IMG/VR virus record: IMGVR_UViG_3300036766_002181
Location: 62,001-126,000 of that record
Reading direction: 5' to 3' (one strand)
DNA length: 64,000 nt
Below are positions 28,257 to 58,347 of this stretch, piece after piece. A program made the translations under genes and the position numbers. The notes below the pieces were generated by a model. That model was not told where the DNA came from, made no database searches, and saw nothing but the letters and a program-made list of their open reading frames with translations. Each line of letters starts with the position of its first letter. Position 1 is the first letter of the stretch.

Positions 28257-29954
28257 TTACTCTTGTCTTGGAACTATATTAAATCCAGATTTTGACAGGG
28301 CAATAAGCTGGGTATGAACATCTCCAAGTCTAGCCTTCGGTATCTTGTTTTTGTCCATAAATTTTAAGGCAATTTGTTCTAGCTCCTCAGAACTTTGTTG
28401 CTTAAGCGGTTCGGTTCCTGGAAGTGGCTTGCCTGTTGTCTGGCCTGTTGGCTCTACTCCTGCCTGTTCTGTGCCCTGAGTTGGTCTGGCAGGCTTTGCG
28501 CCGCCAAAGGCACTCTTTGCTGCCTGCTGTTGCTGGGATCTACCAGAAGGATCAATTTGAGACACTTCAGGAAGTTTTAATCCTGAGTCTACCTGATCTA
28601 TTTCATTTGCTGACAGGGCCGTAATTTCACTTGCAAATACATCGGGTGAAAGAATTTGTTTTCTAAAGTTAAGGAGTCTTCTTGTGACCGATCGCTTAAC
28701 CATGCTTATAACGGCTTTTGAAGTCTCTTCATATTTGTCACGGTCATCTATAGAAGGAGGCTGTGTCTCGGCCTTGTCTGTATCCAGGGCGCGGTCTACA
28801 GGATAGTCTCCCATTCTGCCCTTGATTGTTGGCCAGGCCTTTAGAAAGGCCTTTAATTCTCCATAGACGTTTAGGATGTCTGCCTCTACGTTTCTACCGA
28901 AAATACTTAAAAGTTTGTCCTTTGCGGCAGAACCTCTTTGCGTCATCACGTCATTTATTTTTTTATTGATTGCATCAATCACTTGTTTTGTTTGCGGCAT
29001 GCGCTTTGCATAGGGAGCAAAGACTTGAGTTACTTTATTAAACTGGCTACCAAGATTTGTTAGCTTTTTATCATCAAGAACAAACTCTCCACCTGCCTCG
29101 CCAAGAAACTCCCTTTCTTTTTCTTCTTCTGTTGGCTCATCCCATTCCTTTAATATTTTTGCAATATCGCCATCAACAGATTCAACGGCATCTGCGGTAG
29201 CACTACCAGCATTGGCAGGAGGCTGCACTGTTGGCTCAGCGGGCGTAGATGATGGAGTTGCCTCTGCTGGTGGAGCCGGCTCTGCCGGCTCCACTTCTTC
29301 TGTGGCAACGACCATTGGAACCTTCCCGATTTCTTTAAGCCTTACCAACTCGTTATAACTTAGGCCCAGAAGTTGGGTTGCAATTCCAGGAGCATCAATA
29401 AAGGGTATTGTTCTAGATCTGTAAATTGCGCTAACAAATCTTTGCTCTTCCTTGCTGGGAACGAGGGCAAAGGTAAAGGCATCCTTTATTGCCTTTGGAT
29501 TATATTTTTCTGTGCCTTCTCCAGGTTGCAAAGAGTCAAGTCTAACGTCTGGGGAATTTTTTGGGGCCAGGAAAAGATGTGAAGATAATAGAACCGGAAG
29601 ATCTGAAGTAAAAAATCTGGAAAAGGCATTATAAAGAAAGCTTAGTCTCTTAAGCGTGTCAGAGGCCTTTTTTTCATTTACCTTGCCTGTTATAACCTTT
29701 TGAAGATCATCTTCTGCCGCATTAAGCTGGGCAGCAATCATGGGAATTTTTGTTTTATAGGGGCCGAAGGTTTCGTCAAACTTGGTTATGGCATTTATAA
29801 TACGCTTAACAGTTATTCTGTTTATTTGCTCATTAACCAAAATAACATTGTTTTCAACCCAACCATAGGCAGCCTTATCAAGGAGTTTTTTCTTGTGCTC
29901 AATGAATTTCTCATATTCCTCTCTGAGCAAGCCGCTTTTTTTAATTCCACTCAT
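28257..29954 (-). CDS. Putative internal head protein with two homologous helical domains and Pro/Ala-rich linkers
   Basis: LLREE, LVNE, ILKE and FLGE motifs; F.PY.. helical block occurs twice; late promoter at 29969; start MSGIKK at 29954. Confidence 0.55.
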   Translation of the reverse strand: MSGIKKSGLLREEYEKFIEHKKKLLDKAAYGWVENNVILVNEQINRITVKRIINAITKFDETFGPYKTKIPMIAAQLNAAEDDLQKVITGKVNEKKASDTLKRLSFLYNAFSRFFTSDLPVLLSSHLFLAPKNSPDVRLDSLQPGEGTEKYNPKAIKDAFTFALVPSKEEQRFVSAIYRSRTIPFIDAPGIATQLLGLSYNELVRLKEIGKVPMVVATEEVEPAEPAPPAEATPSSTPAEPTVQPPANAGSATADAVESVDGDIAKILKEWDEPTEEEKEREFLGEAGGEFVLDDKKLTNLGSQFNKVTQVFAPYAKRMPQTKQVIDAINKKINDVMTQRGSAAKDKLLSIFGRNVEADILNVYGELKAFLKAWPTIKGRMGDYPVDRALDTDKAETQPPSIDDRDKYEETSKAVISMVKRSVTRRLLNFRKQILSPDVFASEITALSANEIDQVDSGLKLPEVSQIDPSGRSQQQQAAKSAFGGAKPARPTQGTEQAGVEPTGQTTGKPLPGTEPLKQQSSEELEQIALKFMDKNKIPKARLGDVHTQLIALSKSGFNIVPRQE

Positions 29955-30031
29955 GTACACCACCAGGGTTAAATATTACCAAATTTATCTAAATTGGCTA
30001 AATAAAAAGCAAACACAATAATACATCTTGA

Positions 30032-30334
30032 ATGGAATATCACATATTATTGATAAAAGGATTTGTCATTATGAGCACACCACAACAGAAAAAGAACAAA
30101 ATCTCACTAGAAGTAGAGAGAACTCTCCATAAACACATGGATAGAGTCAAGGAAGGAACAATAGACTTCGTACATCTCTATATTCAAAAGAACAATATTC
30201 CCGTGGATCGTCCTTCCTTGGCAAAAATTCTTGACATTGTTAGACTTGCTCTAGACAGCGAGCATATGAATAAAATGGATATCTTCCTTAAGGATCTTGA
30301 TTCTGCTCTAACTTCAGCAGTTAAAGACGAGTAA
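30032..30334 (+). CDS. Hypothetical helical protein
   Basis: 100-aa ORF; likely start MSTPQQ. Confidence 0.6.
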   Translation: MEYHILLIKGFVIMSTPQQKKNKISLEVERTLHKHMDRVKEGTIDFVHLYIQKNNIPVDRPSLAKILDIVRLALDSEHMNKMDIFLKDLDSALTSAVKDE

Positions 30335-30354
30335 ACTCGCTAGTTATTTTAGCC

Positions 30355-33066: not shown

Positions 33067-33633
33067 TCAGTTGCTATCCACAAAAATATTCACGGTAAGA
33101 TCATAAAGCTCTTCGTTGGCAATAGGCTGTCTGCCAACAAAGGTTCTTAGGGAATGGGCTGTACTATTAAGTACATAATAGCCGTCACTAACTCTATGAA
33201 CTCCAAGTGGAAACAGGCCCTTAAGGCTAGTTAAAAGCGCCAGTCTGGTATCCTCTGCCCTGTTCCAGGTAGCAAAGTTTCCCCAAAGAAAACTTGCCTG
33301 CTGAAGTCTTTGTCCATTGGCTTGAAACCAAAAGTAAATCTGGCCCGGCTTTGTTGGCTCCTGGGAATAAAAGCTTGTTTTTTTGACCATCCCACCATTG
33401 CCATAGTTGCAGTTTCTTAAAATTTGGTCATCTTCATATACCTTCCAGGTGCCGCCCTGTTTTAAGCAGGTCTGTTCAACCTCTTCGACGGTTGTTTTTC
33501 CTACCTGGTAACCGGCGAATTTAACATATTCAGAATATGCTCTCTTGTTGTTTTGATCATTGGCAGAAACGCTACTTGCCGCCAGAAGTGCCAGGGATAA
33601 AATTATTGATATTGCCGATACGGTTTTGATCAT
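33067..33633 (-). CDS. Exported protein with signal peptide
   Basis: MIKTVSAISIILSLALLAASSVSA signal peptide; AAAGGA SD upstream. Confidence 0.7.
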   Translation of the reverse strand: MIKTVSAISIILSLALLAASSVSANDQNNKRAYSEYVKFAGYQVGKTTVEEVEQTCLKQGGTWKVYEDDQILRNCNYGNGGMVKKTSFYSQEPTKPGQIYFWFQANGQRLQQASFLWGNFATWNRAEDTRLALLTSLKGLFPLGVHRVSDGYYVLNSTAHSLRTFVGRQPIANEELYDLTVNIFVDSN

Positions 33634-33841: not shown

Positions 33842-34600
33842 TTAACTCTTAGCGCCAGCTCTATTAATTTGGCAGAGAATTTCTTGTTTAACAAATTCTC
33901 TTATTAACCTATTTTTTGTTGCTCTTTGCCTTTGTTCCTCTTTAAGATCTTCCAATGGAATATCGGTTATTGTATTTCCCATAAGATCGATTATCTTAAA
34001 GTTGCCTCTCTTGTCTTTTAAGACATTTCTCTGGTGTATGTCGATTAACTCAACCCCAATCTTATTGAGATATTTGGCCGTATTATAACACATTACCAGC
34101 ATTGGAAGATCATTCCTGGAAAAAATATGATGATTGTCTTTTCTTACTCTATAAATCACATCCTTAAGATTTAATAAATGGCCCTCAAAAAAAGTTTGAT
34201 CAGAAACCCTTTCAAAAAAGGCAAACTCTTCCTTGGATAGGGGATATAGCCTTTCTTGAATAATGACATAAAGTTCCAACTCCCAGGTATCATGTTCGTC
34301 TCTTGGCTTGGGATTCTGTACAGTAATCCTTGGAAGTTTATAAACACCATAAATGTTTGATATGTGTTTAAGCTTCTTTCCTTTAAGTCTGGCACTGACT
34401 CTGGCTTCAGACCTGTCTGTTGTAAGCTTAACCACATGACCAGATTTTGTAAGATATGCCTCTCCAAAGGCTCCCTTGCCAAGTTGCTGCAAATCAAATT
34501 TAGAGGTCGGGGTTAGACCAAGTTTGTTTGCCAGACTTGGGTGATGCTCAATTAGGGCATCCTTAAAAAATGTTTCTTTTTCAAACGTGCTCATTGACAA
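33842..34600 (-). CDS. Ser/Thr protein kinase-like protein
   Basis: LGKGAFGEAY, VVKLT, IIQERL, DIHQRN catalytic loop, IIDL. Confidence 0.88.
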   Translation of the reverse strand: MSMSTFEKETFFKDALIEHHPSLANKLGLTPTSKFDLQQLGKGAFGEAYLTKSGHVVKLTTDRSEARVSARLKGKKLKHISNIYGVYKLPRITVQNPKPRDEHDTWELELYVIIQERLYPLSKEEFAFFERVSDQTFFEGHLLNLKDVIYRVRKDNHHIFSRNDLPMLVMCYNTAKYLNKIGVELIDIHQRNVLKDKRGNFKIIDLMGNTITDIPLEDLKEEQRQRATKNRLIREFVKQEILCQINRAGAKS

Positions 34601-34607: not shown

Positions 34608-36008
34608 TTATTTCTTTTTATTGCTGCTGGCGAGCTTAATGTTTCTTATGGCTCCCCTTGCCAGCTTGTCTTGGGTTGGTACTGTTTCGTCGTCAAAGGT
34701 TTGTGAATTAACATTAGATCTAACCCAAATATAGGCCATTTGATCAAGTTTAATATCTCCTATAGAAATAACCTCTTTTTGATATCCATATTCATCAGCA
34801 ATTTCTGATTTGCCAAGAATGTCTGGATTTAATAAGAAGTCATTTCCTCCACCATGAATTTTGGCCCTCATTACAACGAAAAACTTATTTCCCTTGCTAT
34901 ACAGCAACGTTCCCCAATCCTCTTTTATTTTCTTAATAATGGCAGGATTGACTGTCCAGGAAAAGTGATCTCTGGATTGATGGCCTGCAAAAAAATTTCC
35001 ACCTACTTGGGATCTCCATTTTCCATCCTTTTCTTTTTGTCCGTCAATTGCCTTTTTATTGCCACCCAACATTTGTTGAAGAATTTTTGGATCTACCTCC
35101 ATAAATCTATAGGCATACTGATATCTTTGAGGAACCTCTAAAACTTTTTCATATTTTCCTGCATTCTTAAGTTGATCTAGTTTTTTAATCCAAGGATTTA
35201 ATGCTGATGGACTACCGTGGTAATGAACATTCATGGCATTTTTTAAATCTATTTCTTTTCTGGTATTTGGTTCTTTTGGCTTTGGCGTATCTTTTCTTTC
35301 TGGTGCAAATAAATATTGGCCAAAGACTTCATCCTTAGATGCTTCTGGCGCTTCTGATAATAACAATGTTAACTTTATAAGTTCTTCCCTGATCAGGTCT
35401 ACTAATAGCTGCTCATTTTTTATTTTTGGTATTTTTGATTTTTTTGATGAAAAGCCACGAAGATCAATTATTTTTATATTTCCATCTTTATCTTTAAGAA
35501 CATTTTCGCCGTGAACATCTGATAGATAAATTCCCATTTTTAGTAGGTCATTTGACAGTTCTAGACACATGTTTAATAATGGCAAGTCTTCTTTTACAAA
35601 GCCATCGTCTCCTTCCTCATTTTGTTTTGCTACTTCAATTTCATTTTCCAGACCATTGGTAGTAAGCGTTCCCTCAAAAACTTCATGCAGCTTCCAGAAG
35701 AACTCTTGTTCGTGGGCCGACAAGGGATACAATCTTTCTTGTATGATTGCAAACCAATCCTTCATATAGGGAATCTCTGGCAATCTATATACTTCCAAAA
35801 TATTTGCTATATGCTTTATTTTTTTTCCCTTAAGTCTTGCACTAACCGCAACCTCTTTAGTATCTGTTGTAAGCTTAAGAACGTGACCTGATTCTAACTG
35901 GTAGGCATAACCCCAGGCCCCGCCTCCAAGCTCAAGAGAATGCTCTGTTAGACCAAGCTTCTTGGCAACCTTTGGATAAGATTCAATCAGGTCTTCTTTG
36001 AGAGTCAT
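34608..36008 (-). CDS. Protein kinase fused to an R-S-E clade ADP-ribosyltransferase-like domain
   Basis: Kinase: LGGGAWGYAY, VLKLT, DVHGEN, IIDL. C-terminal domain: YAYRFM, FSWT, YQKEVI. Confidence 0.78.
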   Translation of the reverse strand: MTLKEDLIESYPKVAKKLGLTEHSLELGGGAWGYAYQLESGHVLKLTTDTKEVAVSARLKGKKIKHIANILEVYRLPEIPYMKDWFAIIQERLYPLSAHEQEFFWKLHEVFEGTLTTNGLENEIEVAKQNEEGDDGFVKEDLPLLNMCLELSNDLLKMGIYLSDVHGENVLKDKDGNIKIIDLRGFSSKKSKIPKIKNEQLLVDLIREELIKLTLLLSEAPEASKDEVFGQYLFAPERKDTPKPKEPNTRKEIDLKNAMNVHYHGSPSALNPWIKKLDQLKNAGKYEKVLEVPQRYQYAYRFMEVDPKILQQMLGGNKKAIDGQKEKDGKWRSQVGGNFFAGHQSRDHFSWTVNPAIIKKIKEDWGTLLYSKGNKFFVVMRAKIHGGGNDFLLNPDILGKSEIADEYGYQKEVISIGDIKLDQMAYIWVRSNVNSQTFDDETVPTQDKLARGAIRNIKLASSNKKK

Positions 36009-36018: not shown

Positions 36019-36909
36019 TCAAAATAGGTTCTTTACAAAGTCAAGAACTCTTTCAAAGAAGCCGGCTTTCTTTTTCTTTTTTGATGGCAATGGCTTGCCC
36101 GATTCAGAGTCAACAGTTGTCCATACCTCTGATTGCAATCCCCAATCCTCATAGGGAAAATAGGTGTAACCATTATCGGCATATCTTTTGCCCCAAGAGT
36201 TTCTAACAATAAATCCTCCCTTGTCTTTTAGATACCCAACAATGCAAGTTGCATGGTAGCCGAGAAGAGCCTGCTTGTCATTTGCCTGTTTCCACATTCT
36301 TGGTCCATAGTTGTACACGGGAATTGTAAGCAGACAGGGACCATTTTTTACAAGAGCCTTCTTTAGGGCATCTATGCTCTTAACAACAGCATAACCCTGA
36401 ACCCTATATTCTGATGCCTCTTTTTTAAGGGCCTCTGTAATTGGTAGGGTTGTAAGATAGGGATAGTCTTTTTCTGGAACAGAGCCTACCTTTGTTAGGA
36501 TTCTCATCACATCTCTTGGATACATTCCCTCACCCTTTGTAGATCTACTATTATAGATAAACTGGGGGCTCATATAGTCCAAGAAATGAACATCCCTTCT
36601 TTCCTGCCATTCCTTCATTGCGGCAGAGGACATTCCAAAGCAACAACCTTGCTTTCCCTGATCTCTTATGGGAAGAAGCTCTGGTCTATAATCAAGATTG
36701 TCTGGAAGGTCATTTAGATTAATGGCCTGATAAATTGTTTCTGCCTCGTGATCTCTTGGATCGTGTGGACTCCTTTGTACTCTATCCAAACGAACATCCA
36801 GTGCCTCTGTTACCTTTCCACCAGAAGGAGGGGAAACAACAGTAGCAGGATAGATGGTCGTGATTGTTGATGATGGTGATGATTTTTTTGATTTTGATTT
36901 TTTGGCCAT
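36019..36909 (-). CDS. Papain-like (C1) cysteine peptidase
   Basis: LPDNLDYR, IRDQGKQGCC (Q, C), SPQFIY, YHATCIVGY (H), VRNSWG (N). Confidence 0.92.
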   Translation of the reverse strand: MAKKSKSKKSSPSSTITTIYPATVVSPPSGGKVTEALDVRLDRVQRSPHDPRDHEAETIYQAINLNDLPDNLDYRPELLPIRDQGKQGCCFGMSSAAMKEWQERRDVHFLDYMSPQFIYNSRSTKGEGMYPRDVMRILTKVGSVPEKDYPYLTTLPITEALKKEASEYRVQGYAVVKSIDALKKALVKNGPCLLTIPVYNYGPRMWKQANDKQALLGYHATCIVGYLKDKGGFIVRNSWGKRYADNGYTYFPYEDWGLQSEVWTTVDSESGKPLPSKKKKKAGFFERVLDFVKNLF

Positions 36910-39183: not shown

Positions 39184-39675
39184 CTAGTATTGTGCCACGG
39201 CGTTATCAAATCTCAAAGTTAATGTGATCTCCATCAGGTCAGTTGCAGAGTCATAGGCAAGATCTCCGAACTTGGCCTCTGTAATAAAGGCACCCTTGAT
39301 ATCCCAAAGTTGGACCACTGTTCCAACTGGATCTAACATCTTGATCTGTACGTCTCTCTTGTAAAAGTCAGCATAACCGGCTCTGCCTGAAACTGATTCA
39401 AAACAAAGACGAATCCATTCCATGACCTGCTGGGCTCCTGAAGGGGCAATAGGATCATGAAGGACTACGGCAAGAGTATCAAAGGTGGTTTTTCCGGCAA
39501 CATATCTGGTTGAGTTAATCCAGGGAATAGGAATTTCCTCTGTTTTATAACCAGGGCGAGCAGCAGACTTAACAATAAAAGAATCAATGCCTTCTATGGC
39601 AAAAACGAATCTTCGCTTTGCCAGTGGTTCAAACTTGTTTGGCAACAGGGCAGAGCTATCTAGCGTGATCGTCAT
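39184..39675 (-). CDS. Tail tube protein (T4 gp19-like)
   Basis: RRFVFAIEG, ARPGYKTEEI, YVAGKTTF, QVMEW, YKRD..I.MLDPVG..V..W...GAF, LTLRFD. Confidence 0.9.
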   Translation of the reverse strand: MTITLDSSALLPNKFEPLAKRRFVFAIEGIDSFIVKSAARPGYKTEEIPIPWINSTRYVAGKTTFDTLAVVLHDPIAPSGAQQVMEWIRLCFESVSGRAGYADFYKRDVQIKMLDPVGTVVQLWDIKGAFITEAKFGDLAYDSATDLMEITLTLRFDNAVAQY

Positions 39676-49600: not shown

Positions 49601-49727
49601 CGAAGGCAGGGCCTCTTTCTGAGGCCCCTATGATACCCGCAGGAATACCAACTGGCTCTTGAACTTCGGCACTTAAGTCAACTTCTGTAGAAAAAAAGCC
49701 TGGAAATTTAAACACTTGACTCGTCAT
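46677..49727 (-). CDS. Tail sheath protein (copy 2)
   Basis: FPGFFSTEVD, GASERGPAFVP, VRVLG, GGFDG, AVPG, PWFAPAGFNRA, INP, VNVVRML. Confidence 0.95.
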   Translation of the reverse strand: MTSQVFKFPGFFSTEVDLSAEVQEPVGIPAGIIGASERGPAFVPVTVGSFPDFKTRFGNLNPRFAAPYAVIEHLNSRSALTFVRVLGAGGNTTADDIETTRTQGTVVNAGFKVSASLASEPIHGAVQFLVARHEISVSESFGQAGFSHNTSLSGSDARLVRGVIFTANDTRIQVLDHDESWAIGADDAATANSTTKKFKIVISCSLGASFAADEGNPGIRIVTASLDPSNDDYFAKVLNTDPEQFSTYKHVVYANFAVDDAVASVGTSSGDVVIASGSAQTSDLSGDTGLPFLNAFGRFDTRYKQAKTPSIISQPFGITEHNLFHFEARDDGAFPNKKFKISISDIKKSSNPRYKFGTFTVLVRDFEDTDTNISILEQFNNVNLDPESENYICHKIGDRKAFYNFDAEDEQDRRLIVSGRYANISKVVRVVASDEVERKLIPAESLPFGFRGYEVLSTNSRLLDRSGSLADFADIKRLHANLGTSGADAELLAAVVPPIPFRFKITRGAVSTEAGKLEGAPGNFEIVDGRFFWGVKLERIKDVLNPNPVTEPNALIAAYTQFNGISELDAVVTSSMNQDRFHNHKFTLAKVAFGNTSLNDLTSSAEAHIKEAAYIRNGIPDVTNYMITDADDATNRITFATLVNKGATAATFNAFSQFAKFTLVLQGGFDGANILDKHAATYDDRASSTEDRTDGTLGNVNGSFISPGFDFNQNGVGIANNTVASYRESAKIITDAMASNVNVVAVPGQRDPLVTDFYADKVRDYGLALYVMDVPNYNAAGERVFDGETGIFPDPQKTANALEGRAIDNEFVASYFPEIVMDDEANGRRVTAPASVAAVSALAFNDRVAYPWFAPAGFNRAALDFVKRTTTRITQPERNRLFSAHINPIVKFPREGYVIFSQNTLEQQESALGSVNVVRMLNDLKRQVIDIGNRLIWENITPDLRDQLKNQINSVMTSVQIRQGIQTFKIICDSSNNSDADINAHKINCRIVLKPVRSVEFIDMNFVITRSGTSFV

Positions 49728-49829: not shown

Positions 49830-51035
49830 TTAAGGAGTTTTTAAAAACTCATCCAGGGTTTCTTGGTCTGAGGCATAAAACACCGTTTCTCCCTTTTTTT
49901 GGTTTGATTCTAAGATAGAAACTGTCTTTTTAATAAGCCTGCCTGTCCTTGGATCCAATATCTCTTTGTGAGAGGCATATCTCTGAAGAGTGGTAGAAGT
50001 TTGCCTTCCTTCTTCTGCCTGATCAATATCATTTAAAACATATTTGTCTTTATTTTCTAGGGCCTCATTTTTTTCAAGATGCGATTTTGGTATAATGTCA
50101 GCCGTTGGAAAAGTATCAAAAACCACGACAGGAGATAACACCTCTCTGCGAATTGGAACCATTCCTGTTTCTGGATTCGGGGCCAGAATAAAACCCTTAA
50201 TTGTTACCTCAAAGGTGTATCTCAAAATCCTGGAATCCTCAGAAAAGTCATCAAGATTATCAGAACCAGAAAAACTGTCCCCAACATAGGCCATAAACCA
50301 ATAACCCTTATCAGTGGTCAATTTATATCCCCTAACCTGCGGCAAGAATGAGCCAACAAGGGTTTCAATTAGATAATTCATGTGTTGGGTATAGCTGGTC
50401 CAAAAAACAACCTCATAGGTTGTTGTAAAGAATTGAGGTTGTGGAATTGTTATAATTTCCCACATATTGTTTCCTAGCCTTGGGCTTAAAAGACCACCAG
50501 AGGCAATCTCTGGATCTCTTCCTGCCTCGCCCTGATTGGCTCTCAGGGAGGATCTCCGTGAATTGTCCATATTCTTTAAGGCCAATTTATTGATAAAGTT
50601 TTGATAATCTAGATCCTGCTCCTTTGTAATTCTTCTTTTTATTCTTAATGTGCCAGTAAATTGGTTTATTCCTCGGCCATTAATATCCTCTGAAGTTTGG
50701 GTAAATGATTTTCGTCTAATTGATATGGCAGGAAGCATTATCTGCTTATTCCTATCTCTTGGCGGGCGAAGACGCTTGGCCACGGCAAAACGTTCCCCTG
50801 TGGCGAATATAACAAATGGCTTTTTTATGGCTATTTTCTTATTTGCCGAGGCAATATTTTTTGCTGAAAATCCTATGTCCTTGTCAAACAGATTAAAAAG
50901 AGCAACATCTGCATCTTCGATTCCGGCCGGTGCGATGGCAAAGTCTGTTACAGGAGAATCTCCCTCATATCCCGAATCTAGGTGTGGTTCTGGATTTCTG
51001 GGATCCCTCTCTATCGTCTGTCTGGTTGTGGCCAT
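49830..51035 (-). CDS. Tail completion / sheath stabiliser (T4 gp15-like)
   Basis: IEDADVALF, LPAISIRR, IPQPQFFTTTYEVVFWT..MN..IE; position next to the sheath. Confidence 0.75.
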   Translation of the reverse strand: MATTRQTIERDPRNPEPHLDSGYEGDSPVTDFAIAPAGIEDADVALFNLFDKDIGFSAKNIASANKKIAIKKPFVIFATGERFAVAKRLRPPRDRNKQIMLPAISIRRKSFTQTSEDINGRGINQFTGTLRIKRRITKEQDLDYQNFINKLALKNMDNSRRSSLRANQGEAGRDPEIASGGLLSPRLGNNMWEIITIPQPQFFTTTYEVVFWTSYTQHMNYLIETLVGSFLPQVRGYKLTTDKGYWFMAYVGDSFSGSDNLDDFSEDSRILRYTFEVTIKGFILAPNPETGMVPIRREVLSPVVVFDTFPTADIIPKSHLEKNEALENKDKYVLNDIDQAEEGRQTSTTLQRYASHKEILDPRTGRLIKKTVSILESNQKKGETVFYASDQETLDEFLKTP

Positions 51036-51054: not shown

Positions 51055-52818
51055 TTAACCGTTATAGTGTAATTGATAAACTTCACGAGAAAGACCATAA
51101 TCAAGCAAAACAACCCTGCCGTCTGCTGTCTTGCCCCAGTGTTCTATGGTCCTTAGATCTCCATTGAGCAGTCCTGTGTCTTCCATGAGATACAAAATAC
51201 TTTGAAAGAATTTATTGTGAATTCTACGAGGATGTTTGGCGAACTCTTCTCTGCCGCCTAGCCTATCTGGAAACTTTGTTACATAAAACAAATCTGCAAC
51301 ATCCTGCTCAAAATCCAGTCCTGTTAATTTTTGGAATTCATTATAATCTGTTATTGGTCTAACAATTTCAGAAACTAACCACTGAAACTTTGGATCATAA
51401 TCGTAAATCTTGGCAACAACCGGCTTTGTTTTGGGATTGGTAAAAACATCTACTTCTGTTTCGTTTTGGGCCAGGCCTCTTGCTCCCTTTGCCCACTTTA
51501 AAACGCTTTTATTATCAACAAGATAAACTCTTCTGGCACTTCCACTGTTAAGAAAGGTTCCGTGTCTTTTAAGATAAAGTTCTTGTACCTCTTCTTTTGA
51601 GAAATGCACAGCATCTCCTGCCGACTGTAAATTTTTAAACCTTTGCAAATCAAGAAATTTCTTTTCCAAAAGAAAAGAACCATAGGCTTCTCTTAGGCCT
51701 TTTGGAAGCCGGGCAGATTCTTCTACTGTCTGTTTACCATTGTTATTTATTCTCCGTCTTAGCTCTTCGTTGCCACCTTCAACGGCAATGCCATAATCCA
51801 ATACAACCAATCTTCCATCTGCCGTTTTACCCCAATGTCCGATATAGGTAAGTTCCGAAGCGTATATACCAACATCTGTAATGAAACTAACAATCTTTTT
51901 TAAAAAAGAATTGTCTTTATATCTGTTGAGCACGCGGCCGAGGCTCTCTTGTTGCCAACAGACGGCATTAAATTCTTCAAAAGGAATTCCTGTTAAAATT
52001 TCAAAGTCCCGGTCGCTTGTTAATTCTTTTACCAACTCAGAAACAAGCCATCTAGGACGTTCAAAGTTTGTATCATAATCAAAAATCCTCGTTACAAGAT
52101 CTTTTGTTTTTGGATTTGTAAACACGTCTAGCTCGGCCTGGTTTTGTCTTAATCCAAACTTGTTATAGGCAAACTTTAAAACCTTGTTGTTTGAAAGCAT
52201 ATAGGTTTCCCTTGAAGAGCCCTGACCAAGATATGCCTCTTTTGGAACTCTATGTGCCAAATAGTATTGTTGATCCTCCCAATTTATTATTTTCTTAAAC
52301 TCATTAAAATCAAAGAATTTTTTCCCTTCATTTATAACAACGGGAAAATAAACCTCTCTTAGTGAGAGCACCTCTTGCTGTGTCACCGTCGCAATTGGCT
52401 CATTAAAACCTTTTGTGTTATAATGATATGGCGCAAGCTGTTGCCCTGTAAGAACATGGGCAAAGTCATTATTTTTGTCTCTATTTGGTTCGTCTCCTGA
52501 ATAAAGATTTGGTGTAGACATAAGCTTACTATAGGCAGCATAGACAGCCTTGTGAAGCTTCTCGCTGGTCAGGGATTGGGTTGTATAGGTTGCCATGCTC
52601 CCAAGCTCTTCCATGACGCCCAGACGAAGCTCGTTCATAACAACCTTTCTAAGATCCAAGCCAAGTCTTTTTGCTATATTCTCTACAAACTCTTCTGTTA
52701 TCGTTTTTGGATTAAGGGGGCGGATTCCTGGATTTGCCAGTCCCATGCCAAGATCATCTCGATTGGTAGCCTGCATGTCTTGCTCTAAATAGATCAATAG
52801 TTGGCCCAAATTATTCAT
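51055..52818 (-). CDS. Tandem double atypical protein-kinase-like protein
   Basis: Two copies of L.(Q/S)GS.R..Y..VLK.A..QN..E..VFTNPKTK..WLVSE..HWGKTADGR.V.LDYG; start probably MNNLGQ at 52818. Confidence 0.8.
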   Translation of the reverse strand: MNNLGQLLIYLEQDMQATNRDDLGMGLANPGIRPLNPKTITEEFVENIAKRLGLDLRKVVMNELRLGVMEELGSMATYTTQSLTSEKLHKAVYAAYSKLMSTPNLYSGDEPNRDKNNDFAHVLTGQQLAPYHYNTKGFNEPIATVTQQEVLSLREVYFPVVINEGKKFFDFNEFKKIINWEDQQYYLAHRVPKEAYLGQGSSRETYMLSNNKVLKFAYNKFGLRQNQAELDVFTNPKTKDLVTRIFDYDTNFERPRWLVSELVKELTSDRDFEILTGIPFEEFNAVCWQQESLGRVLNRYKDNSFLKKIVSFITDVGIYASELTYIGHWGKTADGRLVVLDYGIAVEGGNEELRRRINNNGKQTVEESARLPKGLREAYGSFLLEKKFLDLQRFKNLQSAGDAVHFSKEEVQELYLKRHGTFLNSGSARRVYLVDNKSVLKWAKGARGLAQNETEVDVFTNPKTKPVVAKIYDYDPKFQWLVSEIVRPITDYNEFQKLTGLDFEQDVADLFYVTKFPDRLGGREEFAKHPRRIHNKFFQSILYLMEDTGLLNGDLRTIEHWGKTADGRVVLLDYGLSREVYQLHYNG

Positions 52819-53524
52819 TATAGAATCCATTATTGCCCTGTTCCTCAAAGGCTTCATCCTTTGGATTTCCAAGATCATCCTTCTTTTCTGTGTCTATTTT
52901 TCTTGGGCCATCTCCAAGGGCAATCTCGGCCATATCATTGCCAAGGTGCTCTCGAATCTCTCTCTTGTCTGCCGTAGGCCCCTCTTCGGTTTCTGGGAGG
53001 CCCCTCTGTTGAACAAACTTATTTTGAACCTGGCTATCATTAAAGTTTTTGCTTTTAAACAAAAGCTCCTTAAATGTCTCTATATCAAACTGACCGACTC
53101 TTGATAGCTTGCCGGTTACCTTAACCGCCTTATCATATTCGACCTGGCCATAGATGTTGTCTACGTCTATTGCATTCAATATTTCATAAACCTCTTCACC
53201 ATAAACAAAGAAGTCACCAGAGGTAACAGAAATATCTTTATCAACCAAGTCTCTTGTTTGAATATAAAGCTCAATTGAAGTATCTCCTTCCATGCCAAAG
53301 GCATTCCACTTGGCAGATCTCGTTGGCTGGCCGGCAAGAACATCAAGCTTTATTGGGTTCTCAAAAATCTTTTCAATTGCCTCCTCATAAACCTCATGAA
53401 CCCTTGTCTGAAGCATAGAGATGGGAAAATAAACAATGTATTGGCCAATTACATCTTTTACTAACTCCCTGTTAATATCAGATATAAAATTTTGTTCTTT
53501 AGAACCTATGAATAATCTTGCCAT
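52811..53524 (-). CDS. Neck/head-closure protein (T4 gp14-like)
   Basis: INRELVKDVIGQ..VYFPI, YEEAIEK.F..P, GDFFVYG..VYEI, YGQ; position between gp13-like and gp15-like genes. Confidence 0.8.
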   Translation of the reverse strand: MARLFIGSKEQNFISDINRELVKDVIGQYIVYFPISMLQTRVHEVYEEAIEKIFENPIKLDVLAGQPTRSAKWNAFGMEGDTSIELYIQTRDLVDKDISVTSGDFFVYGEEVYEILNAIDVDNIYGQVEYDKAVKVTGKLSRVGQFDIETFKELLFKSKNFNDSQVQNKFVQQRGLPETEEGPTADKREIREHLGNDMAEIALGDGPRKIDTEKKDDLGNPKDEAFEEQGNNGFYNE

Positions 53525-53559: not shown

Positions 53560-54645
53560 TTAAAACAAAACCCAGCCTCGATATTTGCCATGTTTCTTTT
53601 TGCCACGTATAAGCTGGCGCAAATTGTGTCTCTCAAGACTGTGTTTCTGACAAATCTCAACTATTGAGTAGCCTTCTACCACTTCTCCCAGCGGAGACAA
53701 AAGTCTTGTCAGAGAGCGGGCTTCAATAGTGTTTAAACAATTGCTTTGATTCCATTCCTCATTATTATAATTTTTATATCGAGTCCAGCCTTTATAAAAC
53801 CACAGACTTTCTCTCGTTATGTCCCTAACCTTTGTTTCAGACAGATTATTTTCATTGGCAAAATCTTGAAGATTTGTTATATTTTTGTAAAGAATACCAC
53901 CTGGCGAAAGAAGATTTGCATTTTGAAAACCTTTGAAATTTCTTGTGTCCTTTCCAACAAAATCAAGTTCTTTTAGAATTGGCCTTGAACAAACCAGCTT
54001 ATGCTTTTCTTTTATATTCTCCAATAATGCCTGTCGGCGCTTTTCTATAGCCTCTTTTGAATGAGTCTTTTCATGCCTATCAGGATCTTCTTGCCACATT
54101 TTTTTGAGCATTTCAGATGTGGCTTGTTTTCTTTTTTCATTGCCTTTCCATTGTTCCTTTCGAATTTCTGAAAGATTTTTTCTATGTTCCTCTGTTTGCG
54201 CAAGTCTATTATTTTCCATCATTTTCTTTCGAATTTCTGGGTTTGCCCAATTGGCAAGAGCAACTGCCGATATTTTTTTGCTTGTTTCTTCAGGTGTTTT
54301 TGAATAACAAGAACGGCCTTCTCCTTTTGATTGTTTTTTGAAGTTATAGCACAGGGCTTGTTTGTCATAATATTTTTCAATATATGATTCCTCAATCAAA
54401 AGCCTATCTTCTTGTGGTCCTTCTACTGTCTCCAAAATATGAAATTCAAATGCCTCTTCTCCGCATTTGTTAAAATCATTCTGAAGAAACTTGTTGTGGT
54501 GGGTTCCCTTTCTTAGGGATTTTAAATGGGCATTGCCACGAGATTTAAACTCTTTTGCAGAACCAACATAAATGCGACCATTTATTATATTAACGATTTT
54601 ATAAACTCCTGACTTAAGAGAATTTCCTTCATATAAAAATTTCAT
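53560..54645 (-). mobile_element. Free-standing GIY-YIG homing endonuclease between the two neck genes
   Basis: SGVYKIVNIINGRIYVGSA, HHNKFLQNDFNK; duplicated C-terminal LLSP.G...GW DNA-binding module. Confidence 0.9.
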
Positions 54646-54721: not shown

Positions 54722-55990
54722 CTATGCAATCGTCAATGTAACATTTGGTGGCATCGGCACCATCAAAAGTTTCTTCATGTTGTTTTCTGCCAACGTTGCC
54801 TCCAGCTCTGCCAACTTGGCAAAGGTTAGGCTATCCAACTTTGCCGTGAGTCCTGTATCTCCTACCAACAGCCTCTCCTTGTCTTCTTTTGCCTGTGTAA
54901 GCAAGGACTCTGCATTCAGCTTAAGTTCTGCTCCACCAATTGGTATTGTATCTATTTTTCCTCTTACTCTTCCCAGAATCTCTGTACAAAGAGCAAAGGT
55001 GTATTGAAAGATCCAGTTCTTGGCCCAAGGGTTTAGACTTGAATAATTGATAAGACCAAAGGGAATATTGGCAGGGCTGTTAACCCCAAACATGGTATCA
55101 TCTGGAATGTTAATTCCGCCCATACCTCCAATGCTACCAGAAACGCCCATTGCATTTGCAAGGATCTCTGATGTGGGTGATGCAGGAAAGCCAACTCTAA
55201 TCCAGACCCTATTGTTTATTCTTTCTACGGCCGGCCTTGGAATAGGAAAAATACGAATATCCCTACCTGATATTCTATATCGATAATGAGATCTCCTAAC
55301 CCTTTGAGCCTCCTTTAACATACTTGCTCTAAGAACGTCCTCGAAGATCGGCAAGATATAAAATCTTGTATCTGGTATATAACTTTCTACAGGAAGGCCC
55401 GAGGCAATAAAGTTTGAAGCCAGGTTGCTGTTAAAAACATATTGAATTGGGGCGAAGTGAAACACCTCCAAGATTTTCATGACGCCTCTACTACCAGAAG
55501 GCATCTGACTGGCAATTGGCACTCCAGCCCCATCTACAAGATCTGTATATAAATCATAGTCCTGCTTGCCATCTATGAGAGTAATAGAGCCTGAAACCGA
55601 ACCCCTGCTTTGACCATAGCCAATTTCTGCCGAATAGGGTTCAACCTGACGAAGCAGGAATTCTAAATTTGGCTTAATATAATTGTTGGTTAGGTTTATT
55701 GATAGATTGGCCGTATTGGGATCATTTGGATCTACAGAGCCTGTTTGGGTTCCCAGAAGGCTTGTTAGGTTTGACTTGGCCTGATATTCAACTATGTTTG
55801 CATTGAATGTAAAGGTTGCCTCTTCAAAGCAACACCATATCATCTTCTTTGTTAGTTCAACGTTCAATACATCTTCTCCATGCTTCCTTAAGATATAGAA
55901 CACAATCTTGTCTGCGTCTTTTTGAAATACCGGGTCTTTATCAAAAAAACCGAAAGAAGTGGGCTTGATTGTCGAATTAAAGGAAGACAT
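54722..55990 (-). CDS. Neck/head-tail adaptor protein (T4 gp13-like)
   Basis: LRKHGEDVLNVELT, FEEA, QDYDL, WIFQY..AL..EILG.VRGK...IP; start MSSFNS at 55990. Confidence 0.85.
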   Translation of the reverse strand: MSSFNSTIKPTSFGFFDKDPVFQKDADKIVFYILRKHGEDVLNVELTKKMIWCCFEEATFTFNANIVEYQAKSNLTSLLGTQTGSVDPNDPNTANLSINLTNNYIKPNLEFLLRQVEPYSAEIGYGQSRGSVSGSITLIDGKQDYDLYTDLVDGAGVPIASQMPSGSRGVMKILEVFHFAPIQYVFNSNLASNFIASGLPVESYIPDTRFYILPIFEDVLRASMLKEAQRVRRSHYRYRISGRDIRIFPIPRPAVERINNRVWIRVGFPASPTSEILANAMGVSGSIGGMGGINIPDDTMFGVNSPANIPFGLINYSSLNPWAKNWIFQYTFALCTEILGRVRGKIDTIPIGGAELKLNAESLLTQAKEDKERLLVGDTGLTAKLDSLTFAKLAELEATLAENNMKKLLMVPMPPNVTLTIA

Positions 55991-57580
55991 ATGAATTTCT
56001 CTATAATAAATAGAAACACGACGAGGATAACCTATGAAGAGGCGAGAAAAAGATTCGAAGAATACCATCCAGATATTATTCTGCTTGAAAATGGGTATAT
56101 GGGCTGGAGGAAGCCTGCTTGTTTCTTTGATAGAATTATAAATAAACCATTTTCAGGGTGCAGGCCAAAGGATGTACTTCGTTTTAAATCGGTGCATCCT
56201 GATAGACGCAAAGAAAAACAAAAAAAATCATATAGAAAAACTTTAGAAAAACGACCAAAAAAAGAAATAAAACCAAAAAGAACATGGAAAGAAGTGGTCG
56301 AAAGTAGAAAAAAAACAATGAAACAAAAATATGGATTTGAGAATCCCTCTCAAATAAAAGAATTTCAAGAAAAGAAAAAGATAACAAGTCTAAAAAATTG
56401 GGGTGTTATATCTCCGTTGTCTCTTGGATCGGAAATTCGTAAAACAATTGTTAAAACAAATATTAATAAATACGGTGGCAAATCTCCAAGCCATTCAATT
56501 GAAGTTCGCAAAAAAATGAAAGAAACAAATTTAAGAAAATATGGAGTAGAATATTATTCTCAAAGCAAAAAACGCAATTTTGATACGTCAAAAAAAATAT
56601 TATTAAATGATGGGATCACGCTATTAACAATTAAAGAATTTTTTAAAAAATATATTGTTAAGCCGTGGCCAACAAAGGCTACAAATGTACACTGGTTTCC
56701 TGGCCAGGAAATTATCAACGAATCGAATATGATGGAAAAAATAAAAGTTTATCAAAGTCACAAAACAGGATTAGAACATCTGTTTCAAAATCTTTCTGGT
56801 CTATCTCACTTTAATAAAAAGCCAAAAAAAATCAAAAGACTTTTTCGACCAGACTTTTGTTTAAATGATAATGTTTTTGTTAATGTGGATGGACTTTATT
56901 GGCACAGCGAAAAATACCATAATAAACACAGTCACAAAGAAGTAAGAGAATCTTTTGAAGAGGCCCAATTAAGAATTTTGCAGTTTAGAGAAAACGAAGT
57001 ACGACATAATTTTCCAATTGTTTGGTCGATTTGCCAAAATTCTATAGGAAACACAAAAGATAAAATTTTTGCTAGAAAATGCTATATAGAAAAAATTTCT
57101 CAAAAAGAAGCCAATAGTTTTTTACTTAAAAATCATTTAAAGGGAAGCAAAAATGCAAAACATTTTGGTTTAAAAACAAAAGATAATAATGTTTTGGTAT
57201 CTGTTATGTCTTATAAAATCATAAAAAACATTTGTAAAATTGAACGCTTTTGTTCTGTAATAAATACAAATATAGTTGGTGGATTTGGCAAGCTTCTAAA
57301 AATAATAGAAACCAATCTACCGAAAGAATGTACGGCTATTCATTATTGGGTTGATTTAAGATATGGTATAGGAAAATTTTTAACAAACTTTAATTTTATT
57401 CATAAACGAGATACAATTGGGTGGGAATGGACCGATGGATATAGTTGCTTTAACCGTCTTAGGTGTGTCGCCGAAAAGGAATATTCTGAAAAAGAAAATG
57501 CTAAAAGAAAAGGAATCTTTCGTATTTATGATTCAGGACAACGATTATGGGAAAAGAAACTTATCGATGAATCAGAATAA
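55991..57580 (+). mobile_element. Hef-like endonuclease: KYG repeats, Vsr/PD-(D/E)xK-like core, C-terminal GNAT-like module
   Basis: KYGFENPSQ / KYGGKSPS / KYGVEYYSQ repeats; RPDF...VDGLYWHS; FL.KNHLKG...IERFC...GGFGKL...RIYDSG; AGGA SD before the ATG at 55991. Confidence 0.75.
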
Positions 57581-58112
57581 GAGATTATTTGCCTATGACT
57601 TTGACAGTACCCTTGTCACGGATATGGGCCCAAAAATGTGGGTTGTTAAGATAACTGGTGAAAAGATACCAATTGGCCAAACTGATTACCAAAATGAAAT
57701 TTATAAGTTAAAGCCGGGAGAATACATAGATTCTAGCGAATATACGGATGTAGAAGATCCTGTTCTTCACCTAGACATACTTGAATCCTTAAAATCAAAT
57801 CTATCAGAGTCCTGCATTCTTACGGCAAGAACCGAGGCAAGTCCTGTTAGGAGATTCATGAATAAGCTGGGAATATACGTTCCAGTAATTGCTGCCGTTG
57901 GCATACACAATAAACACCATGATTCTGTTAAACTTAATGCCCACAGAAAAAAGTCTTGGCTAGATCAAGAGATTTCTAAAACAAGAATAACCTATCTAGA
58001 AGTCTGGGATGACAATTTGACTAATTTAATTGTTATTAAAACACTAACAGAAAAATATCCAGAATTAACAATAAATGTTAACCTGGTAGATCACAAAGTC
58101 GAAGGAAAATAG
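57567..58112 (+). CDS. HAD-superfamily phosphatase
   Basis: YDFDSTL motif I, ILTAR motif II, K, WDDN motif IV; start MNQNKR at 57567. Confidence 0.85.
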   Translation: MNQNKRLFAYDFDSTLVTDMGPKMWVVKITGEKIPIGQTDYQNEIYKLKPGEYIDSSEYTDVEDPVLHLDILESLKSNLSESCILTARTEASPVRRFMNKLGIYVPVIAAVGIHNKHHDSVKLNAHRKKSWLDQEISKTRITYLEVWDDNLTNLIVIKTLTEKYPELTINVNLVDHKVEGK

Positions 58113-58119
58113 ATTCTTC

Positions 58120-58347
58120 TTATTTTCCTTTAGGAGTGGCCTTGGTGACGGCCTTTTTCTTTGAGTCTTGAATAACCTCATTAAGAGATTCTCGAATCAT
58201 TTTTCTAAGCTCGTCTATTGAAAGCTTCTTTCCTTCTTTTTGAACAGGCAATTGTTTCTTTGCCTTTTGAACAGATTCTTTGACCATCTTCTTTACAAGG
58301 GCCACGAATTGTTGCTCCGTTAGCTTAATTTCTTTGTTTTTTGTCAT
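58120..58347 (-). CDS. Small basic late protein (scaffold/internal-protein-like)
   Basis: IKLTE, MVKES, MIRESLNE motifs; late-promoter motif at 58366-58373. Confidence 0.6.
   Translation of the reverse strand: MTKNKEIKLTEQQFVALVKKMVKESVQKAKKQLPVQKEGKKLSIDELRKMIRESLNEVIQDSKKKAVTKATPKGK

Follow-up and report, generated by a model that had tools for sequence, protein, structure and literature searches.

An uncultivated phage contig of 244.7 kb in IMG/VR raises the question of whether enzymes encoded among its tail genes could be loaded into the prohead, cut by the prohead protease and delivered with the DNA. The window analyzed here is a 64,000-nucleotide stretch (positions 62001-126000 of the contig), and an initial annotation had proposed that six of its proteins are virion-packaged effector polyproteins processed at (L/I/V)-x-E sites. 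This packaged-effector interpretation is partly supported.

The window covers the morphogenesis genes for neck, sheath and tube in a T4-related jumbo myovirus (Table 1), and its domain and gene annotation can be given with high confidence. The late, structural setting originally claimed is borne out by the two sheath paralogues, which match the Mel-JY01 sheath by tblastn, by the tube protein (44% identity to the Mel-JY01 tube; the Phage_T4_gp19 match is weak), and by three neck/tail genes syntenic with those of Microcystis phage Mel-JY01 (tblastn). Accessory genes are inserted between these conserved structural genes. They encode a papain-family peptidase, a protein with three zinc ribbons, several homing endonucleases and four C-lobe-less kinase domains, of which one stands alone, one is joined to a putative ADP-ribosyltransferase (ART)-like domain and two form a tandem pair. 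For example, the tandem-kinase gene sits between two of the conserved neck/tail genes by synteny, and together with a GIY-YIG endonuclease it interrupts their series. The candidate genes lie 10, 7, 25, -1, -8 and 19 nt from their neighbors in the tail operons, the zinc-ribbon gene overlapping the next gene by 1 nt. This tight spacing argues for late synthesis and, since the genes are packed into late structural operons, we infer that the inserted-gene products are made while proheads form.

Table 1. Coordinates of the features discussed, numbered from the first nucleotide of the window.
Feature	Position	Strand	Evidence
565-aa protein, no assigned function	28257-29954	(-)	alignment of 6 homologues
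Stand-alone kinase paralogue, C-terminal helical tail with LKE and IRE	33842-34600	(-)	alignment, 46% identity
Two-domain protein, 466 aa, kinase and ART-like domain	34608-36008	(-)	identical gene call on public contigs
Candidate R-S-E type ADP-ribosyltransferase-like domain, residues 225-445	34674-35336	(-)	residue pattern, weak leads
Helical linker, residues 188-224, with IRE208 and LSE219/APEA	35337-35447	(-)	helix in both models
Kinase domain without C-terminal lobe, residues 1-187	35448-36008	(-)	alignment, AF2 model, fold search
Papain-family (C1) cysteine peptidase	36019-36909	(-)	Pfam PF00112 E 9e-18, 65.6 bits, cutoff 20.7
Tail tube protein, T4 gp19 type	39184-39675	(-)	phrog_4542 E 2e-25
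Protein with three CxxC..CxxC zinc ribbons, 411 aa	42385-43620	(-)	Pfam HypA E 3e-11; CxxC map
Two tandem tail-sheath paralogues, 992 and 1016 aa	43646-49727	(-)	phrog_23 E 5e-51, 3e-44; Phage_sheath_1C
Three conserved neck/tail genes	49830-51035, 52811-53524, 54722-56068	(-)	tblastn synteny, PHROG, Pfam
Two tandem divergent kinase-like units, 587 aa	51055-52818	(-)	phrog_4301 E 3e-29, two stretches; jackhmmer; alignments
Inter-kinase linker sites LRE397/A and LLE405/KKF	51661-51696	(-)	kept in 3/3 homologues
GIY-YIG homing endonuclease	53560-54645	(-)	inserted among conserved neck/tail genes
75-aa basic protein, leader-like stretches VKKMVKESV and KLSIDELRKMIRESL	58120-58347	(-)	leader HMM

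A prohead protease, which the initial annotation had expected elsewhere in the genome, is indeed encoded on the same contig. This T4 gp21-family enzyme (Pfam Peptidase_S77, E 3e-17) lies about 11 kb past the window, and it shares the region 4-13 kb past the window end with a portal and a major capsid protein (MCP), both of the type found in T4, the phage that packages Alt and IPI-III. The protease gene is split by an intein, so that splicing would be required for function. The MCP has (L/I)-x-E60, kept in three relatives, about at the T4 gp23 cut position and shortly before the segment aligned with mature T4 gp23*. Scaffold-like head proteins are rich in (L/I)-x-E (21 vs. 11.9, 11 vs. 5.1 and 6 vs. 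2.3). In addition, five small proteins of the head module have a common leader whose last residues are (I/L/V)-K-E; they score 24.7-30.6 bits, and the next best hit 5.5.

The capsid targeting sequence (CTS) of T4 acts at the N-terminus, and the T4 leader sequence is MKTYQEFIAE. The CTS comprises 10 residues, the last of which cannot be Asp without processing being blocked (PMC9026906); T4 Alt is trimmed by gp21 at two places, losing six residues at ITE-6 and a further 63 at LTE-619 (PMC5694885). Like IPI-III, the hypervariable small proteins of the present phage share an N-terminal leader ending in (L/I/V)-x-E, but unlike that of T4 this leader reads M-(K/R)-(I/L)-T-x-x-Q-L-x-x-(I/V)-(I/V)-x-E. 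The giant myoviruses phiKZ, 201phi2-1 and SPN3US also pack many enzymes into the head, from which propeptides are removed at a three-residue, Glu-ending motif, and phiKZ-type ejection paralogues bear identical N-terminal propeptides (PMC5694885). Those phages use an S80 protease and an (S/A/G)-x-E motif, whereas here the protease matches Peptidase_S77 and Leu or Ile stands at P3 of the conserved sites.

The motif positions originally listed are all present, with the exception of IKNE in the kinase/ART-like protein, where two residues separate I and E. When each protein is shuffled 1000 times with its composition kept, about 42 (L/I/V)-x-E sites are expected in the six candidates and 53 are observed, such that the number of motifs fits composition and overall enrichment is absent. 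Only the 75-aa protein is nominally enriched (5 sites vs. 1.5, p 0.007, with 84 ORFs tested), and the GIY-YIG endonuclease, with 12 sites vs. 7.1, stands out as much as any of the candidates. Nor is MTLKE at the start of the kinase/ART-like protein special, since 9 of 84 ORFs have such a motif in their first 10 residues. An excess at linkers was found (16 of 48 sites in inter-domain linkers making up 15% of length, with 9.0 predicted from linker composition, P 0.006, the segment boundaries having been set after the sites had been seen), yet the mirror motif E-x-(L/I/V) is equally in excess (16 vs. 8.5, P 0.002), and the linker signal is therefore not directional. Finally, L-x-E occurs 10-11 residues past the DxG of kinase domains, and it follows C-terminal or stand-alone domains (81%) as well as internal ones (92%); it is thus probably a structural part of the domain itself.

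These counts, the undirected linker signal and the intrinsic kinase-tail motif would all be expected if the accessory enzymes were late or constitutive cytoplasmic proteins from moron-type insertions that never enter the virion, a serious possibility that we consider only slightly less likely than the reading preferred below. The enzymes would then work in the cell that makes them, for example by countering abortive-infection defences or by acting on phage proteins, and L-x-E would be a by-product of Leu/Glu-rich amphipathic helices. In keeping with such a role, the candidates fill the same type of inter-gene slot as homing endonucleases, and the canonical head-module N-terminal leader is absent from five of the six (the three kinase proteins, the zinc-ribbon protein and the 565-aa protein). 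The T7 kinase, an early gene product that is made after injection and not packaged, is reportedly the known precedent for a phage kinase acting in this way. However, a host-takeover enzyme made only late would be of little use unless carried to the next cell.

Among the sites listed, four are conserved in homologues, namely LSE219/A of the kinase/ART-like protein, LGE286/A of the 565-aa protein, and LRE397/A and LLE405/K of the tandem-kinase protein. The 565-aa protein consists of two conserved regions joined by an unalignable Pro/Glu/Ala spacer, with a small domain at the C-terminus, and no recognizable domain was found with Pfam, PHROG or Atlas. At its spacer/domain-2 junction (LGE286/AG), (L/I)-x-E/A is present in five of six homologues. 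In the tandem-kinase family, which is small, (L/I/F)-x-E-(x)-K-K-F-x-D precedes every kinase unit. The retention of junction sites amid otherwise unalignable spacers argues against an entirely non-virion role, although these motifs could equally be the opening residues of the next domain.

Four kinase domains lacking the C-lobe are confirmed, the kinase fold by alignment, model and fold search and the tandem pair by phrog_4301, jackhmmer mapping and alignment. That of the kinase/ART-like protein, an architecture found in this protein alone among its 150 best relatives, keeps the G-loop, Lys45, Glu52, Asp164, Asn169 and Asp182 in the alignment, with DLR replacing DFG. Its AF2 model has a pLDDT of 92.4 and yields 761 PDB fold matches at E<=1e-3 (top matches p38, ERK2 and Fus3, probability 1.0), and phrog_18305 “kinase” matches at E 9e-5. 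In the tandem-kinase protein, for which an alternative ORF start is possible at 52878, the catalytic loop reads H-W-G in place of the expected Asn. Relatives form arrays of 3-5 kinase domains (jackhmmer).

The second domain of the kinase/ART-like protein is a plausible but unproven ADP-ribosyltransferase. The ART call draws on a residue pattern (an invariant Arg, then Ser-Trp-Thr, then Gln-x-Glu) and on weak leads, those from the Atlas being DRAT, NarE and ADPrib_exo_Tox; the domain model has a pLDDT of 88.8. A PDB fold search found no significant match to a solved structure (pertussis S1, probability 0.23), the BFVD matches are three uncharacterised phage proteins (E about 6e-5), and a Pfam ART match was found in none of 35 family members. 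In 30 of these 35, a single conserved (L/I/V/M/F)-x-E column lies in an N-terminal leader, and LSE219 is aligned with its Glu. The leader of these relatives, two hydrophobic residues, any residue and Glu, is found in 56% of first-22-residue segments vs. 6% of random windows; the mirror gives 28% vs. 9%, and an Asp variant is unenriched (7% vs. 11%). Judged by these comparisons, the leader motif is directional and Glu-specific, which speaks against a purely cytoplasmic role. On another contig, nine adjacent genes share the ART-like-family leader, and an ART-ART protein is among them. The family thus resembles T4 Alt in bearing an (L/I/V)-x-E type leader. Unlike in Alt, the ART-like domain here stands behind a kinase, making the leader equivalent internal, and it has no Pfam match to Alt or another ART family. 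LSE219 also falls within a confidently predicted helix, as the non-virion alternative would have it.

The kinase/ART-like gene belongs to one tight three-gene unit, 10 nt downstream of the papain-family peptidase gene and 7 nt upstream of the stand-alone kinase gene. The peptidase has the Cys, His and Asn motifs and no signal peptide, and it could be an alternative processing enzyme, separating effector domains before or after delivery in the style of polyvalent proteins, for which peptidase-mediated domain release has been proposed (PMC5512222). We regard this as unlikely, even with an apparently active C1 enzyme next door. The peptidase described for polyvalent proteins is a metallopeptidase that forms part of the effector chain itself, the word “papain” is absent from PMC5512222, the cleavage motif of the present peptidase cannot be inferred, and the enzyme could equally be an effector or lysis factor.

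The zinc ribbons claimed earlier are real and span residues 222-241, 264-285 and 340-364, following an N-terminal region with no recognized fold. The anti-restriction label is unproven: the third ribbon matches the Lar profile (PF14354, Lar_restr_allev) over 53 of 58 positions at a borderline 28.3 bits, 0.3 bit under the curated cutoff of 28.6, the match amounts to little more than a CxxC..CxxC ribbon, from which no anti-restriction function can be read, and unlike Lar this longer protein has two further ribbons and no homologue. L-x-E sites lie between the ribbons, and a search of 5.8 billion proteins returned only the protein itself. The fullest form of the original proposal, in which all six candidates are packaged strings, most listed sites are cut and each domain or ribbon is released, seems very improbable. 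A gp21-family protease is encoded, sites flank each zinc ribbon and kinase unit, and multiple cuts are possible, as in T4 gp22 and Alt. However, the motif is no commoner than chance, and many of the listed sites fall within conserved parts of folded domains, such as IQE91 at the kinase hinge and VNE42 in domain 1 of the 565-aa protein (kept in 6/6 homologues). To our knowledge, the freeing of a 35-residue ribbon by cutting has no precedent.

By its sequence, the 75-aa protein is the sole candidate that resembles the head-module leader. It scores 9.9 bits with the leader HMM (null maximum 5.7), and seven of nine residues are identical to the leader of L003:8923-9291; no recognizable domain was found in it.

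Taken as a whole, we tentatively prefer, at somewhat less than even confidence, the reading that some of the candidates enter the prohead, are cleaved there at a few conserved sites by the gp21-type protease and are delivered with the DNA; these steps of packaging, cutting and injection we infer. Synteny, tight spacing, the head machinery, the leaders and the conserved junction sites are in favor, while the lack of enrichment, the mirror motif, the missing leaders, the LSE219 helix, the unconfirmed ART fold and the intein count against. The likeliest packaged subset would be the kinase/ART-like, 565-aa and 75-aa proteins. Cutting would be confined to the four conserved sites, those of the tandem-kinase protein included, rather than extend to every listed L-x-E. 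The products would enter the cell with the DNA in the manner of T4 Alt and internal proteins, and may phosphorylate, and perhaps ADP-ribosylate, host proteins as infection starts.

Such a payload may be compared with polyvalent proteins, phage proteins predicted to be delivered, whose kinases have lost the whole C-terminal subdomain, keep the ATP-binding and phosphotransfer residues intact, and also occur in stand-alone versions (Iyer, Burroughs and Aravind 2017, PMC5512222). The present kinases likewise resemble Kinase-PolyVal (PF18762) in their truncated core with catalytic residues intact and in having a stand-alone copy. Unlike polyvalent proteins, they score below threshold (18.4 vs. 27 bits, in the tandem-kinase protein only), and each chain contains one or two domains, none of them a peptidase; the section of PMC5512222 on these kinases does not mention arrays of 3-5 kinases. 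It also cites the T7 protein kinase (gp0.7) as functional precedent, and the present enzymes would resemble it as phage-encoded Ser/Thr kinases used against the host. What would be new in this phage is a variant of the T4 internal-protein/Alt theme combined with polyvalent-protein kinases.

The enzymes of T4-type head assembly lie beyond the window end, on two further pieces of the same contig (L003 and L004), and the prohead protease that the initial annotation hoped to locate elsewhere in the genome is indeed encoded there, about 10.8 kb past that end. A LAGLIDADG intein is placed directly after the protease's GELDH motif, and splicing is required before either of the two essential head enzymes, protease or portal, can work. 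Several sequence features suggest that the protease keeps a T4-like specificity. Scaffold-like head proteins contain significantly more (L/I)-x-E than shuffled sequences do (21 sites vs. 11.9, 11 vs. 5.1, and 6 vs. 2.3), and the major capsid protein (MCP) carries an (L/I)-x-E60 site, shared by three relatives and located a few residues N-terminal to the part aligning with mature gp23*. In addition, five small proteins encoded around the protease and MCP genes begin with the leader M-(K/R)-(I/L)-(T/S)-x-x-x-L-x-x-(I/V/L)-(I/L/V)-K-E, scoring 24.7-30.6 bits with a leader HMM, while no other match in 84 kb exceeds 5.5 bits. Relatives retain one of the five, and the remaining four are specific to this phage, the same pattern as that of T4 core and internal proteins bearing a capsid targeting sequence (PMC3012670, PMC9026906).

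Six minus-strand genes of the window had been proposed to encode virion-packaged polyproteins that a gp21-type protease cuts after (L/I/V)-x-E. The motifs cited are all present as described, although one of them, IKNE, does not have this form; the motif is short and common, and occurs within the first ten residues of 9/84 ORFs. Its supposed enrichment did not survive composition-keeping shuffles, with 53 sites in the six candidates against about 42 expected. Only the 75-aa protein was nominally enriched among the candidates (5 sites where 1.5 are expected; p 0.007 in a set of 84 tests), and one homing endonuclease was as "enriched" as the candidates. The scaffold-like head proteins served as positive controls and pass this test, which can therefore detect probable substrates. 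A linker test proposed with the original idea was also run, with domain limits taken from HMM envelopes, models, and alignments and drawn after the sites had been seen, such that any bias favors the hypothesis. Inter-domain linkers, 15% of the length, hold 16 of 48 sites, more than the 9.0 predicted from linker composition (P 0.006), but the excess is equaled by the mirror motif E-x-(L/I/V) (16 vs. 8.5; P 0.002), leaving no directional signal. Since the mirror motif shares the excess, it reflects Leu/Glu alternation in helical linkers rather than a protease; no excess was seen for (L/I/V)-x-D, (L/I/V)-x-K, or (S/A/G)-x-E. Composition and helical periodicity thus explain the counts, and protease substrates cannot be identified by counting a three-residue motif such as L-x-E in a handful of proteins. 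The full proposal of many cuts in all six proteins is very improbable.

The proposed kinases are real. Protein kinase domains make up residues 1-187 of the kinase-ART protein, all of the single-kinase protein (46% identical to those 187 residues), and two units of the tandem-kinase protein. Their alignment retains the G-loop, the catalytic Lys45, Glu52 of helix C, the catalytic Asp164 and Asn169, and Asp182, the DFG equivalent. A confident AlphaFold model (pLDDT 92.4) matched 761 kinases among PDB folds (E<=1e-3), with p38, ERK2, and Fus3 at the top (probability 1.0); at the sequence level, phmmer of the kinase-ART protein against the PDB reached kinases at no better than E about 0.7. Each domain ends about 15 residues past the DFG equivalent (a DLG equivalent), followed by the next domain or the protein end, and this loss of the C-terminal subdomain fits the description of the polyvalent-protein kinase in PMC5512222. 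The corresponding Pfam family, Kinase-PolyVal (PF18762), matched the longer form of the tandem-kinase protein (51055-52878) at 18.4 bits, below the gathering threshold of 27, and gave no match to the kinase-ART or single-kinase proteins. The activity of the tandem-kinase protein is uncertain because H-W-G replaces the catalytic-loop Asn. The kinase-ART stop codon (34608-34610) is no in-frame read-through junction, as the kinase gene that follows uses a different frame, and the two pieces were searched separately.

The database homologues P0006-P0153 include metagenomic phage proteins of 1000-2500 aa (e.g., P0006, P0007, P0008, and P0009) with 3-5 tandem kinase domains that have no C-lobe; many have a PGYPVP motif after an N-terminus of the type M-x-x-L-D-(D/E)-L-I-x-E. 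A P-(V/M)-(L/I)-E motif after the kinase domains of these giant arrays was considered as a cut site and rejected as specific evidence. It belongs to the domain itself: it is kept in stand-alone and last domains, where a conserved helix follows (81% vs. 92% of internal domains), and its distance from DxG is constant at 10-11 residues.

The C-terminal half of the kinase-ART protein belongs to a large viral family, whose members are mostly stand-alone proteins of 225-260 aa in an exhaustive search; P0005, P0015, and P0033 are ART-ART proteins with the two domains in tandem. Across 35 aligned sequences, the invariant residues are, in order, Arg102, Ser151-Trp152-Thr, and Gln-x-Glu213, each of them within a predicted strand or at its beginning. 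This order is the R-S-E signature of ADP-ribosyltransferases (ARTs), and language-model features likewise lead to the DRAT, NarE, Lart1, and exotoxin ART families, as does one BFVD name to ARTs in general. The ART assignment of the initial annotation thus fits the motifs but is not backed by profile or fold: a Pfam scan of all 35 members found no ART family, the family profile matched nothing among PDB sequences, and the model found no significant PDB fold, with pertussis S1, CARDS, and PltA at probability 0.12-0.23 and TM at most 0.25. That the domain is ART-like is about an even bet.

Of the remaining candidates, the zinc-ribbon protein has its three ribbons as claimed, but the third falls just short of the Lar restriction alleviation family (PF14354; 28.3 bits vs. 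a cutoff of 28.6); the collection's precomputed Pfam list includes PF14354, and no homologue was found among 5.8 billion proteins. Its 477-aa partner, whose start overlaps the zinc-ribbon stop by 1 nt, is highly charged (Asp/Glu/Lys-rich) and matches no PHROG or Pfam entry. The 28257-29954 protein has five homologues and no known domain, and an Atlas search gave no lead.

The kinase-ART protein and the last ORF of the window match IMG/VR contig IMGVR_UViG_3300036766_002181 (244,715 bp) at 100% identity, and the window corresponds to its positions 62001-126000, read in the same direction. Almost all window genes lie on the minus strand (see table). At the DNA level the region is close to no GenBank phage: megablast with 12 kb of it against 50,697 phage records gave no match, nor did tblastn with the kinase-ART protein against the same records. 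The claim of a late, structural region holds for about 39-56 kb, with its sheath, tube, and Mel-JY01-collinear genes, and is unproven for 28-38 kb. Both sheath paralogues (992 and 1016 aa) have a long N-terminal extension and match the single, 812-aa sheath of Microcystis phage Mel-JY01, for which a literature search found no publication. Relative to this conserved backbone, the tandem-kinase gene, the zinc-ribbon gene with its partner (40952-43620), and three or four homing endonuclease genes are insertions. The endonucleases (GIY-YIG, HNH, and one GIY-YIG+HNH fusion adjoining the MCP) are unusually dense between structural genes, in slots like those taken by the kinase and zinc-ribbon insertions. 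The non-structural left third of the window contains genes for sugar modification, PhoH, a GroEL-like protein, and an exonuclease. Within the late operons, the candidate genes fit tightly, -8 to +25 nt from their neighbors. Regulatory signals are uninformative: there are 6 copies of the T4 late-promoter consensus TATAAATA where 4.4 are expected, and scans for sigma-70 promoters and terminators equaled shuffles.

Coordinates of the candidate genes and other features (window positions unless prefixed)
Feature	Coordinates	Strand	Remarks
Kinase-ART protein (candidate)	34608-36008	-	466 aa
Single-kinase protein (candidate)	33842-34600	-	
Tandem-kinase protein (candidate)	51055-52818	-	ORF could start at 52878
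Zinc-ribbon protein (candidate)	42385-43620	-	
28257-29954 protein (candidate)	28257-29954	-	
75-aa protein (candidate)	58120-58347	-	
Papain-family (PF00112) cysteine peptidase	36019-36909	-	65.6 bits vs. cutoff 20.7; not listed initially
477-aa partner of zinc-ribbon protein	40952-42385		
Giant tail-sheath paralogue 1	43646-46624	-	tandem with paralogue 2
Giant tail-sheath paralogue 2	46677-49727	-	tandem with paralogue 1
Tube protein, T4 gp19-type	39184-39675	-	
Further structural proteins	54722-56068, 52811-53524, 49830-51035	-	collinear with genes preceding sheath in Microcystis phage Mel-JY01
Homing endonucleases	39750-40847 (+), 53560-54645 (-), 55922-57580 (+), 38082-38999 (-); L003:5658-7712		
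Sugar-modification cluster	900-12000		nucleotide-sugar epimerase, GtrB-like and other glycosyltransferases, dehydrogenase
PhoH-like ATPase	17519-18700		
GroEL-like chaperonin	19265-20794	+	opposite strand
2OG-Fe(II) oxygenase	26787-27455		
Possibly exported proteins or lipoproteins	33067-33633, 58463-59164 (+)		N-termini signal-peptide-like or lipobox-like (…LALLAASSVSAND; …LSFIGGCDGG)
ORF at window end	63249-63929 to L003:9350-10681		443 aa; several hydrophobic helices, long poly-Ser and poly-Pro runs
MCP	L003:3590-5503		phrog_138 E 8e-72; T4 gp23 in PDB 1e-28
Acidic scaffold-like protein	beyond window end		864 aa
T4-type portal	L004:69-5906 = contig 139629-145466		1945 aa; several intein, Hint, HNH, LAGLIDADG matches
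Prohead protease, Peptidase_S77 (T4 gp21 family)	L004:6979-8706 = contig 136829-138556		PF03420 E 3e-17, two stretches around LAGLIDADG intein

Resemblance of the candidates to known substrates was sought in leaders and in conserved sites. Searching all six translated frames of the window with strict and broad leader HMMs turned up nothing convincing outside the 75-aa protein, which scored 5.2 and 9.9 bits (null maximum 5.7) and is identical to one leader at 7/9 residues; the leader HMM detected no shared head-protein leader in the other five candidates. The string MAIKTKLTERHLKEIV at the start of the zinc-ribbon protein, considered as a leader, is unsupported by the HMM and has no homologues for comparison. 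Comparison across protein families is more favorable. Among relatives of the ART-like domain, a leader of two hydrophobic residues, any residue, and Glu is found at 56% in the first 22 residues against 6% in random windows, with the mirror motif at 28% vs. 9% and the Asp variant at 7% vs. 11%. By analogy, this preference for Glu over Asp fits the T4 protease, where Asp at P1 blocks processing (PMC9026906). The leader also holds the sole (L/I/V/M/F)-x-E column conserved throughout the ART-like family (30/35), a column that aligns with LSE219, followed by APEA, in the helical linker of the kinase-ART fusion. Likewise, (L/I)-x-E followed by A(G) at LGE286 is kept in 5/6 of the 28257-29954 family, where it ends an otherwise unalignable spacer. 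In the tandem-kinase family, LRE397 (before Ala) and LLE405 (before KKF) are kept in 3/3, and such a motif precedes every kinase unit.

These observations are tentatively best explained by a narrower reading, in which a few of the candidates would enter the prohead, be cut at a few conserved sites, and then be delivered like T4 Alt, on the grounds of late synthesis alongside a gp21-type protease and leader system, family-level leaders, and conserved junction sites. In Alt itself, the cuts at ITE-6 and LTE-619 remove just six residues and a C-terminal piece, respectively (PMC5694885). Each of the conserved sites (LGE286, LRE397, LLE405, and the leader Glu/LSE219) might also form the opening turn of the domain that follows it, and it is almost as likely that the candidates are cytoplasmic accessory enzymes with incidental motifs. 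Processing might instead fall to the neighboring C1 peptidase, encoded 10 nt upstream of the kinase-ART gene and bearing the catalytic Cys/His/Asn motifs GCCFG, GYHATC, and RNSWG; this is given little credence.

The family-level evidence also includes the Logan contig SRR14492199_7387 (L008:6823-19067), where nine adjacent genes with unrelated bodies all start with MRITESQLRRI or a close variant, and they include one ART-ART protein and one protein that weakly matches PARP; as a cluster, they resemble a locus of internal proteins. The contexts of three ART-like or kinase relatives held T4-like replication genes and no head genes within reach. It is conceivable, although on balance doubtful, that jumbo phages related to T4 and so far seen in metagenomes alone rely on an N-terminal leader for capsid targeting, approximately M-(K/R)-(I/L)-T-x-x-Q-L-x-x-(I/V)-(I/V)-x-E and cut after Glu by a gp21-type protease, to load hypervariable effector sets that include the new ART-like family and arrays of kinases without a C-lobe. 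Here, fusion of a kinase gene with an ART-like gene that bore the leader would have turned the old leader into an internal linker, at which a single cut would free kinase and ART from one packaged precursor. No description of this leader was found in the literature consulted.

The concept of packaged effectors is already known from T4 Alt and internal proteins, the ejection proteins of phiKZ and SPN3US, and polyvalent proteins. What appears to be new is the leader sequence and its attachment to an uncharacterized ART-like family, the stringing of as many as five minimal domains into kinase arrays, and a kinase/ART-like fusion with an internal leader equivalent, unique among the 150 best relatives. 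Even if packaging proves wrong, arrays of 3-5 minimal kinases and leader-sharing gene clusters are still useful for jumbo phage annotation and provide testable leads. If packaging is real, this phage group would deliver protein kinases, and probably an ADP-ribosylating enzyme, with its DNA before phage gene expression, thereby extending the principle of T4 Alt and internal proteins to a new enzyme class. The shared leader would then serve as a sequence tag for finding injected effectors in uncultivated phages, and the effectors so tagged would be candidates for counter-defense functions.
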